From positions 27,032,001 through 27,096,000 of the forward strand of contig NC_079172.1 in assembly GCF_947568905.1 (NCBI RefSeq): DNA of 64,000 nt. Direction: 5' to 3'. This DNA comes from Ostrea edulis. Lineage: Eukaryota. Below the pieces are notes generated by a model. It saw nothing but the letters and a program-made list of their open reading frames with translations. It made no database searches and was not told the origin of the DNA. Position numbers and translations under genes: made by a program. This document shows, one piece after another, positions 520-22,485 of this stretch; within the stretch, counting starts at the first letter, position 1, and every line of letters starts with the position of its first letter.

Positions 520-2505
520 ATGGATTTACTTTATTTTCTTCCATTGGTTTCTTTATTTTTGCACCACCTAATACCAAAGGTATCGTGTGTAGAGATGTGG
601 GACAGAGCCACAGTAGTATGCGAAACCAATGGCAAAAAACAGTAAGTAGACTATAAATTATAATAACCAATGGCAAAAACAGTAAGTAGACCGTGACTTA
701 CTACAACCATTTAGTAATATCATATATACATTGCATAATGTTGGAATGAAGTTGATCAAAGCTTTATCTAAAAGTGTTTTATAGTGTTTCTAAATCATAT
801 TTGAAAACTCTTAGTACGCATGGTGCAATATTAATTTGTAGCAGGGCAGTAAAATTCCGTAAAAATATATATTCTGTGATTTGGAGACTTTCCACAGCAA
901 GACTATATTACGTCACATGGTTGTTATCAGTACGAAAAGGTTTGAAACTTTTTCATGCACTGTAACTAAAGAAAATGTCAAGTTTAAATGACATCGGGGT
1001 CTGATTGCGTAAAAGCAGGTGAAATATCACCAGTGGTACTATTTCATCAAGACGACCTATTCCTATCTTTGCCCGTCCGTCTTCTGTCGTACACTTTTGC
1101 ACATTTGGATCTTTTCACCAATACTACCACATGTACTACTACTAATAGTAGTACCCAGGTAACCATTCTCATATTTGCGCATTTAAAATGATCACAAATT
1201 TCCTATATTATATGTGTTGTAAACTTTAAAGTTGTAAAGTAAATTATATGTTCAAGTGATGTAATTTTGTAGTTTTTCGTCTTTACTCAGATTATTTCCT
1301 GTATTCTTTGTCAGTAGTAAATTATTCTTTTAAATACATTGCACCGTTAATAGACAAGTCTAAATATGTAAATGTATCATAAAACTTGAAACTCGCGAGG
1401 TTCAATCTAGAAAAACCAGTTTACTAGTGCTACAGATCAAGTCATATTTCTGGCATGGTTGAGGGTGATACACAAAGTGCAAAAATGATGATTTATTTAT
1501 GTACATAACAAGTGGTTCGCAATTATTTTCAATGAAATTATCATTTTCGTTTCAGGATAGTAGAAGAAAACTCCAATCGAGTCGTGGTTTTAGATTCTGC
1601 ATGTCAGTCGGGAGAGGTAGCATGGCGACTAAGTGAAACCTATGTATACCTTCATTTCCAAAAACCATCCAGATTTAGAGTGTGTTTTAGTAGCCCAGCC
1701 GTACCTGGTTATGAAAAGTACAGTGTTTACAGTATGTCAAGTGAAAAAGCAAATTATGCAGGAAGTCCAAATCGAGGTAATCCATTTTAAAATCGCTGGG
1801 ATATTCTATGTTGAATCTTTCACTATACGTTTGATGGCGTTTAACCAATTTGATAAATTGTGGATGAAAGTCCAATGCTATATGGATATAATTATTACAC
1901 CTTGACACTAGTATCCACCTGGTGTTTCCAGGGATCAGTGTTGGACCTACTCTCAATTTTGTATTCTTTGTAGGATTTATGAGAGTGGTCACTGTTCAAT
2001 ATATATCTTCATTTCTCATACATGTGCTAACATAATAGCAAAACGAAATAGACGATGCGGCAATATAGAAATGTTATAATTGCATGCATTTCAATTTGCA
2101 GTGTATCAATAAAAAAACGTTTGCCAATACCAGATAATTCAATTCAAACTGAAAGAGATGAAAGAATGATGGATGAAGATGGGCAATCTCATTTTCTTTT
2201 CATTGAAATTACTATAGAGTCTTCCTTATCTTCAATATCCATTTGTCATGATCTGTCATCATTTTCTATATATAAATTCCAATTGTGGCAATTCATGTTA
2301 CATTTTATCAACTACTGACAAAGGTATCATGATATTTTTTGTATTAAAACCATCAAAATATTGATTTATGCTTTTAATGTTTGAATTTGCAGATGGTGAC
2401 ATTTGTTTAACGTCCTCAGGAACAAACCTCAACCTAGCCCTGCAAGCATTGAATACATATTACCTGTTAACTGCTAAGTTCAGTGTATCTTGTGTTTTAT
2501 CGTAA
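520..2505 (+). CDS. Secreted ~151-aa 5-Cys protein, paralog A (CUB/meteorin-N-terminal-like); exons 520-641, 1556-1776, 2393-2505
   Basis: GT-AG introns in phase 2 and phase 1 join to an open 456-nt CDS: MDLLYFLPLVSLFLHHLIPKVSC-VEMWDRATVVCETNGKKQIVEENSNRVVVLDSACQSGEVAWRLSETYVYLHFQKPSRFRVCFSSPAVPGYEKYSVYSMSSEKANYAGSPNRDGDICLTSSGTNLNLALQALNTYYLLTAKFSVSCVLS*. Hydrophobic N-terminus; AATAAA at 2505-2510; same exon structure as paralogs B and C. The fold call is inference. Confidence 0.85.
1912..2013 (+). mobile_element. Short degenerate Penelope-like terminal fragment in paralog A intron 2
   Basis: Similar to the shared 3' terminus of the other copies. Confidence 0.55.
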
Positions 2506-3748
2506 ATAAAGAAAAGTTTTCAGATTGTTTGTGTTTCCTTACCAGTAGAGGTTGAAGTTATGTAAAGATCTTTCTTTTAAATATTGACAAGAAATATTTA
2601 ACACGGTCGATGGTTCACATAATAGATAGTCTTGTCACGTGTTCTAGATTTGGAAGCTTGCTCTCTGTGTAAATTACTGAGTTTTCTATGGATATGGTAG
2701 TTACTGTAGCTTATCCCAGTATCATACGTTAGATGGGACCTCTTTTTAATCAAACAACAGTAATGTCTCTATCACTAGACGGTCGAGTCAACAGCCTGTT
2801 CCCAGCTCACATCATACATTTCTGGAATGATTCGACGTCCTTCTTCAATTTAGGTATCCAGCTAATGTTGTCTCAATCAGATTCAACTGGATGCTACGTC
2901 TCATCTGCTTCGTGACATAAATGATAACCGAGACTTTTCCGTGAAACGCGTTAAACAGCTATAATTTTTCACCATGTCATATATGAAAATCTATAATCAT
3001 TCCACGATTTGACGACGTCTGCCATTCTTGCAGACTGCAGTCCAAAAGCAGGTAAACATCCTTCACGTGTTTCCTCTCAGGGGCCTCGGCGCAACAGGTT
3101 CCTTATTGTATTTTTGTTATATCATACTTTGTAATACATTCACCTTGCATTCACCTGATTCCTAGTCTTTTCCGAGTATATTCCCTTGATGGGGCATTAA
3201 TTCATATTAAACTCTCTACTCGTCCACAGTGGAATTCTAATGTTATACCAAATCAATTTTCTTGTTTCTATATTTATCTAATTTACTTCTAGCCGAGGTG
3301 TAAATCAACTGTTAAAGACATTAAATTAAAGGATCAATGACTGTTAGTCAATCAATTCTTAGTTATCAATATCATATATTGTGAAAGTAAGAATTGAACT
3401 CATGAAATGGGGGATCCTTTGTGCTTTTGTTTGTAAATTGCAGTTTGATTATCACAAATTGCAACAGTTATGCTAGCTAAGTTGTTTTCATATGTGGACA
3501 GTTACATGTCTCTATATACTATGTGTTCATGAAAAAATATGAATTGATTCAAATGCAAATCTGTTAAAAACAAGAGTGTATGTGGGGATTTTGAACAGAA
3601 ATATAAACTGTATGCAGCCTAATTCCGTTCCAGTCAAATTTCTTTCTAAAACAAAAACAACGGGTCGTGGTAGCCCGGGGATTAGAGGCTCGTGTTACAG
3701 CACGCGATTCACAACTGAGAAACCCTGGTTCGTTTTTCGATTCCGGTT

Positions 3749-4195
3749 TTGAATATGGTGTTTATATCTCTCAACTGATTCGATAAGCAAGAGTTGGTTC
3801 TGCGTATGATCAGTTTTTAAATCAATGCAGGCTACTGACAAACATACTGATGTTACAGGGGTTTCAACGGTCTAGTTTAAAGTCAGCATTTCACAAATTA
3901 TACGGTCGTTATAATGATCTAGTTTGCCAATACAACCTATCATTGGGTCAATCGCTGTTTGACATATCTTATTAGGCAGTTCTTGACACACTGATTTTGA
4001 CTACGGACAATTCCATTTACCTGATTAAGATATACAGCTCACAGGGGTGTGACCGATCGGCAGGGGGTGTTTACTCCTCATAGGCACCCGCTCCCACCTC
4101 TGGTATATCCAGGGGTCCGTGTTTGCCCAACTCTCTATTTTGTATTGCTTATAGGAGTTATGAGATTGATTACTGTTCGTTATCGTCACCTTTCA
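3749..4195 (+). mobile_element. Penelope-like element 3' fragment (RT C-terminus plus 3' UTR)
   Basis: YGVYISQLIR...LKSAFHKLYGRYNDLVCQYNL, followed by the 3' end shared with the other copies. Confidence 0.7.
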
Positions 4196-4685
4196 TCAAA
4201 CCTAAACATAGGTGGTGACTGTTCATTGGCTAGGTACCTAGTATCAGAAATGAAAATAACAGGTCTTTTGGTTATCCCGTGTAATGTAAGGCGGTGACGT
4301 TTCTATGTGAGTGGAAAGTTTTTGAAGAGGACCTAAAACAACATACAAACAAAACTATAGAAACCAGATAACAAGCCTGCAACGTGATATTTATATGAAG
4401 TGGAACACTATACATAGGATTTGTGTGAAACGACCTAATTATATCTAACTTTAAGGTATAGACATAAAAAGTTAATTTTACACAACAGACAATGTAAGCT
4501 TTCCAATATCGCGTGCAACGATAGTTGGCAATTGTTATGCTTGTTCTTTTTTTTCCCCTGTGCATAATTTCAAATCGAGTTACCTCTCTTACGAGGGCTC
4601 GACAAGGACAGTGCTCATGAAGTTTCTCCTGTTTCAACAAACTTACTAATGCCCCTTACCCTGTGACTGTATTCCATGCAAATCC

Positions 4686-21371: not shown

Positions 21372-21378
21372 TATAAAT
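21372..21378 (+). promoter_or_regulatory. Probable TATA box of paralog C
   Basis: TATAAAT about 80 nt upstream of the ATG at 21453, with an Inr-like TCATAT about 30 nt downstream. Confidence 0.45.
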
Positions 21379-21452
21379 GTCCTCCTGCATCCTTCACAAC
21401 CATCATATTCTTTCAAAACGGTTCTCGAATCGCATCTCTGTAAATTACAAGC

Positions 21453-22485
21453 ATGTCTACATTTAATGTTTGCGTCGCCCTTGCTGTATTCATATCTCAG
21501 ATACACGTATTGGTCTCTGTACCAATCTGGGATCGAGCCAGTCTTGTATGTCAAAATATTAATGGCAAACAGTAAGTATCATATAGAGTCAATTTTAAAA
21601 TCTGAGAAATGTCCTCTTTTTTTTTCTTTTTTCTTTTTTTTTTTTTTTTTTGATAACAACTTTTTTGCAAGAAAAAATTATATTCATCTTTTTTTTTTTT
21701 TTTTTTTTGGTTGAAAAACTGACAGATTTCAATTTCTAAACTGAACAAAAATCCTTTCAATTTCATTTTTGTAAACCGTCAAATTATGCAAAATGTATGC
21801 TCTTGCTTACAAGTTCTTTTGATTTAATTACAATATCATCAACAATTTCGTTTGTACAGTATTTGTTATATTTTAAATTCACGTTACTACATTTTCAGAA
21901 TAATTGATGAAGATTCACATCGTGAGTTATATGTTGACTCTGCATGCTCCTCTGGAGAGGTTGTGTGGCGCATGACCAAAACCCTGGTGACACTGCGCTT
22001 TCAGAAGGCTTCGCCATTCACAGTCTGTTTCAGTAGCAAGGCGCCTGTAGGTTACGAGAAGTTTGGTGTCTACAGCTTCTCGTTGAATAACCTCTTTGTT
22101 GGCAATCCAAATATTGGTACGTTTTTATAAGTCAAACAACAATGACTACTTAAATCACTAAAGCTGAACATTTTATCTTTACTGATACATTGTAGTTCAC
22201 AAATTAACTGACGTAATTATCAGATTCACGGCTTTTTAAATAATAAAAATATGATAATTTTGTATGATTTCATTTGCTGAGTTTTCTTCGTCACATTTTC
22301 TCTTTAAGGCAAACAATATTTTTCTTCATTATTATATGTGCACACGGTATAATTTTCCTTTCTTTCTTTCTCTAGAAACTGACGTCTGTTTGAATTCCGT
22401 CGGAAACGCCTTGGATGTAAACTTACTGTCGCTAGGGAAATACTACGCAATGAAAGCTTACTTCAAAGTCAGATGCCTCTCGTGA
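21453..22485 (+). CDS. Secreted 148-aa 5-Cys protein, paralog C; exons 21453-21571, 21899-22116, 22376-22485
   Basis: Spliced CDS of 447 nt: MSTFNVCVALAVFISQIHVLVS-VPIWDRASLVCQNINGKQIIDEDSHRELYVDSACSSGEVVWRMTKTLVTLRFQKASPFTVCFSSKAPVGYEKFGVYSFSLNNLFVGNPNIETDVCLNSVGNALDVNLLSLGKYYAMKAYFKVRCLS*. Exon lengths 119/218/110, identical to paralog B. Confidence 0.88.

Follow-up and report, generated by a model that had tools for sequence, protein, structure and literature searches.

Three paralogous genes lie in the strand order +,-,+ between positions 520 and 22,485 of a 64,000-nucleotide stretch of the Ostrea edulis genome (contig NC_079172.1, positions 27,032,001 to 27,096,000, forward strand; hereafter the window, whose position 1 is position 9569 of L001, chromosome record OX387712.1). 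We call them g1, g2 and g3. Gene models rebuilt from the sequence have three exons each in DNA that is AT-rich (GC content ~0.35) and that includes a run of N at 52042-52183. Gene g1 (+; 151 amino acids (aa); exon lengths 122/221/113) begins with an exon at 520-641 that holds the start codon, a signal-like peptide and the motif V-x-x-WDRA-x-x-VC and that has GTAAGT as its phase 2 donor. Its second exon (1556-1776) encodes the core of the domain with C-x2-GEV-x-WR, F-x-VCFSS, YEKY-x-VY and GSPN and ends in phase 1, and its third (2393-2505) adds the fourth cysteine, the final strands, the fifth cysteine and a TAA stop. Gene g2 (-; 148 aa; 119/218/110) starts at 9360, with the signal-like peptide and WDRA motif in exon 1 (9360-9242, phase 2 donor GTGAGT), the core of the domain in exon 2 (8869-8652) and a TGA stop in exon 3 (8404-8295). 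Gene g3 (+; 148 aa; 119/218/110) repeats this plan, with the start codon, signal-like peptide and WDRA motif in exon 1 (21453-21571), the core in exon 2 (21899-22116) and a TGA stop in exon 3 (22376-22485), beyond which contigs run on as 3' untranslated region (3'UTR) to at least 22700. All six introns are of the GT..AG type with pyrimidine-rich acceptors, and their phases are 2 and then 1 in each gene. The rebuilt models confirm the layout, intron phases and signal-like peptides put forward in the original prediction, which was made from the letters of the window alone, and the complete set of motifs listed there (V-x-x-WDRA-x-x-VC, C-x2-GE[VI]-x-WR, F-x-VCFSS, YEK[YF]-x-VY, G-x-PN, a fourth Cys and a final F-x-V-x-C) is found in each of the three genes.

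The three proteins are 40-48% identical over their whole length, and tblastn with exon 2 retrieves the paralogues within the window at E 1e-18 to 1e-24, so that paralogy is far beyond chance. Each has a hydrophobic N-terminus of 20-23 residues, read by eye as a signal peptide, and the domain follows at once with its conserved WDRA motif; in several orthologues, this domain retains an N-x-S sequon. The products are thus secretory-type, single-domain proteins without an NTR domain. That they would be NTR-less single domains had been claimed before and is borne out: the stop codon follows right after the domain, Pfam detects no NTR, and the contigs over g3 end in 3'UTR.

Public annotation agrees with these models except at the start of g1. 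Gene g3 is identical to NCBI LOC125657594 (P0002), and g2 has the exact coordinates of a publicly annotated 148-aa gene (L001 17863-18928, i.e., window 8295-9360). Gene g1 corresponds to LOC125659459 (P0026, 180 aa), the NCBI model of which begins at an upstream ATG at 433 and thereby places 29 additional residues ahead of the signal-like peptide. The Crassostrea orthologues lack an equivalent of this extension (window 433-519, +), their own annotated additions being unrelated to it, and in M. gigas the models begin at the downstream Met. Because the 29 extra residues are not conserved in Crassostrea, ATG 520 is the likelier start of g1; the annotated start is then probably wrong and the hydrophobic stretch N-terminal.

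The splicing of g3 was examined by comparing contigs of runs X1 and X2 (organism A; guessed to be RNA) and X7 (organism B) with window positions 21300-22700, leaving out 21611-21720 as repeat. The contigs are confined to the three exons; the junction 21571>21899 is seen in X1 and X2 and the junction 22115/6>22375/6 in X1, X2 and X7, both at GT..AG. Within 21300-22700, no contig showed an onward splice beyond the g3 stop, and coverage continued as 3'UTR. Over the stretch compared, the contigs thus give no sign that g3 is part of a larger protein, and the splicing onto downstream exons that had been named as a way in which the single-domain interpretation could fail was not seen for this gene in X1, X2 or X7. 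The junctions of g1 and g2 rest on annotation and on spliced Logan contigs of relatives, ~1 kilobase (kb) long, which encode full-length proteins (P0007, P0025, P0040, P0047 and others). The summed word depth of g3 in X1 reached tens of thousands, although depth in contigs reflects expression poorly. The exon-only contigs of X1 and X2 differ from window 21300-22700 at nine positions (~1.3%) and lack 11 nucleotides in the 3'UTR at 22566, so that their source is a different strain or population, or else a very close relative. Intron 1 of g3 contains a long A/T-rich simple stretch (21595-21766; poly-Lys or poly-Phe if translated) at which genomic contigs break.

The family has a fourth, diverged member, g0, immediately outside the window on the upstream side, where it is oriented head-to-head with g1 (L001 3483-8517, minus strand, ~1.05-6.1 kb before position 1). 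It is annotated with 252 aa and follows the same plan: we read three exons, separated by introns of phases 2 and 1 and encoding the four Cys also seen in g1-g3, the third exon extending into a Pro/Arg-rich C-terminal tail of ~110 residues. We considered g0 as the NTR carrier that would tie the cluster to meteorin, and this was ruled out, as the tail is rich in Pro and Arg and without a Pfam match; a search for an NTR domain in g0 including its tail found none. The orthologue of g0 in Saccostrea echinata (P0035) aligned with the family profile over the whole domain in hhalign (95.5% probability, E 1.6e-8).

The arrangement of these genes is shared among oysters, in the order filamin, g0, g1, g2, g3, zinc-finger gene. 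Head-to-head orientation of g0 and g1 next to filamin is found in O. edulis and in S. echinata, where g0 stands between the filamin gene (L003:22907-26799) and an opposite-strand gene of 149 aa. In C. virginica, the genes are likewise arranged as g1(+), g2(-), g3(+), and after g3 comes a gene of ~1900 aa (L002:14870-20905) that probably corresponds to the long zinc-finger gene of the window, and the cluster loci of M. gigas are numbered consecutively (LOC105325929-32). Oysters hence share an old tandem cluster of four genes, three of which fall within the window. A distant member in Mytilus sits alone within 10 kb in another neighbourhood at the one locus that was read. The suggestion of an expanded family therefore holds in a modest sense, with four genes in the oyster cluster as against a single gene within 10 kb at one Mytilus locus. 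Orthologues of Ostrea and Crassostrea differ by 0.16-0.24 nonsynonymous substitutions per site (dN), and the NG86 method gave no estimate of synonymous divergence (dS). We read this as saturation of synonymous sites between the two genera, so that a dN/dS ratio is not computable; dN values of this size with synonymous sites read as saturated indicate that the genes are under constraint.

Orthologues were found in Ostrea, Crassostrea/Magallana and Saccostrea, with a distant group in Mytilus (P0019, P0028). An exhaustive HMMER search of 1.84 billion representative proteins with a six-sequence profile returned 15 matches, all bivalve except one, and the one non-bivalve match (1661 aa, source unknown) was rejected as a low-complexity artefact. 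Apart from this artefact, matches of the word search and of HMMER together comprise only oyster proteins, unspliced open reading frame (ORF) artefacts of the same genes and the distant mussel group, and every named match is an 'uncharacterized protein'. When 16 mature sequences representing five subfamilies were aligned, six columns proved invariant, i.e., four Cys, the Gly of C-x2-G and one Leu; the Trp of C-x2-G-x-[VI]-x-W is present in every subfamily but the g0 type. Invariance of the four Cys in all five subfamilies suggests two internal disulfides, for which the CUB pattern would be Cys1-Cys2 and Cys3-Cys4. A fifth Cys near the C-terminus occurs only in the oyster g1-g3 types and has no invariant partner. 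It may be free or intermolecular, linking two chains into covalent dimers or binding another protein.

For the fold, we modelled two diverged members with AlphaFold2. The model of g3 (P0002:23-148, 15 sequences) reached a predicted local distance difference test score (pLDDT) of 86.5 and a predicted template modelling score (pTM) of 0.82 and consists of eleven strands and no helix. The model of the g0-type protein (P0035:19-150), which is ~21% identical to P0002, showed the same sandwich with an additional short N-terminal helix (pLDDT 85.5, pTM 0.80). Among 350,542 PDB chains compared with Foldseek, the N-terminal CUB domain of murine meteorin (7TL6) took ranks 1-2 for both models. For g3, it matched at E 4.2e-6 with a template modelling (TM) score of ~0.5 and 13-14% identity, and the next matches (E 2.5e-5 and weaker) were spermadhesins, the C-terminal domain of the Clostridium perfringens enterotoxin, CUB2 of C1r, PCPE-1 and neuropilin CUBs. 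For the g0 type, the E-value was 1.7e-5 and that of the next match 1.4e-4. A wide search of the g3 model independent of Foldseek placed two cupins slightly higher (scores 8.4 and 8.3). The fold is thus predicted to be a CUB-like beta-sandwich, and on these models the meteorin CUB domain 7TL6 is the nearest solved structure for both members. This is the outcome expected by the original prediction, which had proposed a check of the sandwich by AlphaFold models and Foldseek. We consider it likely that the proteins are members of the CUB superfamily, broadly defined.

Such a membership could have come about in a more ordinary way, namely by reduction of the CUB domains that are abundant in multi-domain proteins of molluscs to a single domain with no special tie to meteorin. 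The four-Cys pattern is of the CUB type, and the top Foldseek matches include spermadhesins, C1r CUB2, PCPE-1, TSG-6 and neuropilin CUBs (E 2.5e-5 to 3e-4). Yet the Pfam CUB model (PF00431) matches none of 15 members even at E<=10, and we consider this origin improbable. The spermadhesins (aSFP, PSP-I/PSP-II) are the closest parallel in build, being a multigene family of proteins with a signal peptide and one CUB-type sandwich of ~110-125 residues. They do match the Pfam CUB model, whereas the oyster proteins do not; moreover, they are mammalian seminal-plasma proteins without orthology to the oyster genes, and their structural scores fall below that of 7TL6.

A further alternative is that the domain was acquired from bacteria, with the claudin-binding C-terminal domain of C. 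perfringens enterotoxin or the collagen-binding domains of collagenases as its kin. Resemblance of the folds, however, is set against spliceosomal introns in conserved phases, animal signal peptides, conserved disulfide Cys and old synteny across oysters; the exhaustive HMMER search returned no bacterial protein, its one non-bivalve match being the low-complexity artefact of unknown source, and the structural scores are again below that of 7TL6. We regard a bacterial origin as highly implausible. Neither the enterotoxin domain, the collagen-binding domains nor the cupins have a sequence relation to the oyster proteins or share their Cys, and they come from other organisms with other gene structures. 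These bacterial beta-sandwich modules and the cupins are here taken as fold analogues only.

Meteorin itself offers a local comparison at the level of sequence. A 47-residue peptide used as a query against PDB sequences matched chain 7tl6_A (E 1.5e-22) and so gave residues 26-72 of that chain. In this segment, C-x2-G-x-I-x-W is followed by a strand of alternating hydrophobic residues, and V-C lies 31 residues beyond the first of these Cys; the bivalve family has C-x2-G-[EVK]-[VI]-x-W, a like strand and V-C at a distance of 27 residues. The element given for meteorin in the original prediction, C-x2-G-x-V-x-W with a later VC, is hence indeed present in 7TL6 and in register with the family motif. 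Hidden Markov models (HMMs) of the family align residues 26-72 in register over 25 residues. When the real segment was ranked among itself and 20,000 shuffles, it came fifth with profile A4 (4.2 bits) and first with profile A5 (6.2 bits). The local sequence signal is weak, yet it sits where the structural match predicts it.

It is attractive to propose, from the predicted fold and this local signal, that the oyster proteins share common descent with the CUB module of meteorin and are its diverged, stand-alone, NTR-less relatives, and we put the probability of this at roughly 55%. Beyond the structural neighbourhood, the likeness includes the general design of the proteins. Both are of a secreted type, with a signal peptide directly before a beta-sandwich of ~120 residues. 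In both, C-x2-G-x-[VI]-x-W stands at the second Cys, a strand of alternating hydrophobic residues comes next, and V-C lies 27 (family) or 31 (7TL6) residues after that Cys. Both have four domain Cys, of which the second and third of meteorin are seen in residues 26-72 of 7TL6. Four of the ten Cys of meteorin are taken to lie in its CUB part, a split that would match the four invariant Cys of the family.

Several observations weigh against this proposal. The structural match itself is distant (TM-scores ~0.5, identity 11-14%, root-mean-square deviation 3.4-5), and the AlphaFold2 models of P0002 and P0035 share most of their alignment and are not fully independent of each other. Sequence profiles do not bridge the gap: the exhaustive HMMER search of 1.84 billion proteins contained no meteorin at E<=1e-3, Pfam, including its CUB and NTR models, gave no match at E<=10 for the exon pieces and 15 mature proteins and none at E<=1 for four further full-length members, the g0 orthologue and mussel members being among the proteins scanned, and PDB sequences searched with profiles A2 and A4 gave none at E<=10. 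Alignment of the family with the 47-residue meteorin segment by hhalign reproduced the same alignment over 25 columns at an E of 0.0036 and a probability of 9%, and this segment of 7TL6 had been picked after the resemblance was noticed. A literature search by twelve locus and UniProt identifiers from O. edulis, C. virginica and C. gigas found no paper that mentions them, and a search for 7TL6 yielded none that describes this structure. Finally, meteorin genes have not been found in invertebrate genomes other than those of amphioxus and tunicates (PMC12316458). The view of these genes as meteorin-type and CUB-only accordingly stands in part: the fold is CUB-like with 7TL6 as the nearest structure, and the profile searches retrieved neither meteorin nor the Pfam CUB model. 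The statement that no named family could be recognized has held up, with Pfam and the PDB sequence search empty and all named matches listed as 'uncharacterized protein'.

These same observations can be explained by convergence, i.e., a bivalve-specific secreted beta-sandwich that arrived at the jelly roll of meteorin and CUB domains without common descent and whose match to C-x2-G-x-V-x-W is a product of chance. That family members among 1.84 billion representative proteins come from oysters and mussels only, that HMMER, Pfam and PDB sequence searches gave no other match and that the hhalign probability to the meteorin segment is 9% are all as this explanation would have it. Against it, 7TL6 is the top PDB match for two members that are only ~21% identical and is clearly apart from the remaining matches for the g0-type model. 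The motif at the second Cys is in register, with an empirical rank of 1-5 of 20,001, and the general design agrees, with a signal peptide directly before the domain, four Cys and a similar spacing from Cys 2 to Cys 3. Convergence is a rather unlikely explanation to our mind, while common descent with the meteorin CUB module is the one that we favour.

Common descent in this form can be separated from a stronger version, namely that the bivalve proteins, in their stand-alone, secreted form, are genuine homologues of this module from protostomes, that the module predates chordates, and that chordate meteorins represent this module joined to an NTR domain. To us, the stronger version is an even call. 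The models hint that the module forming the front domain of meteorin exists outside chordates, by a link that is structural and not proven by sequence. In any case, the oyster proteins are not 'meteorins' in the strict sense, since they lack the NTR domain and the profile searches do not place them in that family; the most they can be called is CUB-like proteins of the meteorin type that stand alone. Meteorin has a C-terminal NTR domain, whereas g1-g3 stop right after the sandwich and g0 has its Pro/Arg-rich tail instead. Similarity at the HMMER level is absent, identity in structural alignments is 11-14%, and the fifth Cys of the oyster g1-g3 types is another difference from meteorin. The oyster genes also form a tandem cluster. 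The family is found in bivalves, whereas meteorins are reported only from chordates (PMC12316458), and a true relationship to meteorin would be new.

Functional considerations start from the build of the proteins. Each would consist of a signal peptide and one disulfide-bonded, CUB-like beta-sandwich of ~125 residues, with no NTR domain. Spermadhesins show that a lone CUB-type domain can serve as a soluble binding protein. By analogy with these single-CUB proteins and with the CUB domain of meteorin, the oyster proteins might be soluble extracellular binding proteins or ligands that hold on to another protein or a glycan through the loops and the edge of their sandwich. Meteorin and meteorin-like are secreted factors in neurotrophic signalling, metabolism, immunity and left-right patterning, and their receptors are debated. 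Metrnl is composed of a CUB plus an NTR domain with five disulfides, and the meteorin CUB domain is described as receptor-contacting (review, PMC13359822).

If the relationship to meteorin is true, the bivalve family would provide an outgroup for telling which surface of the meteorin front domain is ancient and would show how the two-domain meteorin was assembled, with the receptor-binding half being older than chordates. The bivalve proteins could then be cytokine-like ligands, and their partners might point to ancestral meteorin receptors. If the link fails, an ordinary lineage-specific family of secreted beta-sandwich proteins remains. For oyster biology, four 'uncharacterized' genes receive a name and a fold.

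The sequence around and between the genes contains traces of further copies and of repeats. A search for additional copies between 10 and 21 kb found only a 45-nucleotide remnant of a g2-type exon 2 (R-M-[TS]-Q-S-Y-x-A-L-R-F) at 13095-13139 (+), which is 80% identical over its 45 nucleotides and lies in an ORF reading R-M-S-Q-S-Y-L-A-L-R-F. No other exons were found around it, so that it is probably a dead, decayed fragment of an extra copy. Between g2 and g3, a run of ORFs of 58-120 aa at 18765-19761 (-) resembles the C-terminal part of ORF2 of non-long-terminal-repeat (non-LTR) retrotransposons and is presumably a dead insertion. A dispersed repeat is present in at least six copies on both strands, at 4025-4189 (-), 5586-5759 (+), 7303-7476 (-), 14319-14450 (+), 18270-18401 (+) and 23424-23597 (+). 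Its ORF includes approximately SDQSHNSYKQYKIESWANTDPWTHQRWDQVPRRSKHPL, another ORF that recurs, with SLKSAFHKFYGRYNDLVCQYNLSLGQ, is often close by, and the repeat looks like an interspersed element family that fills the intergenic space.

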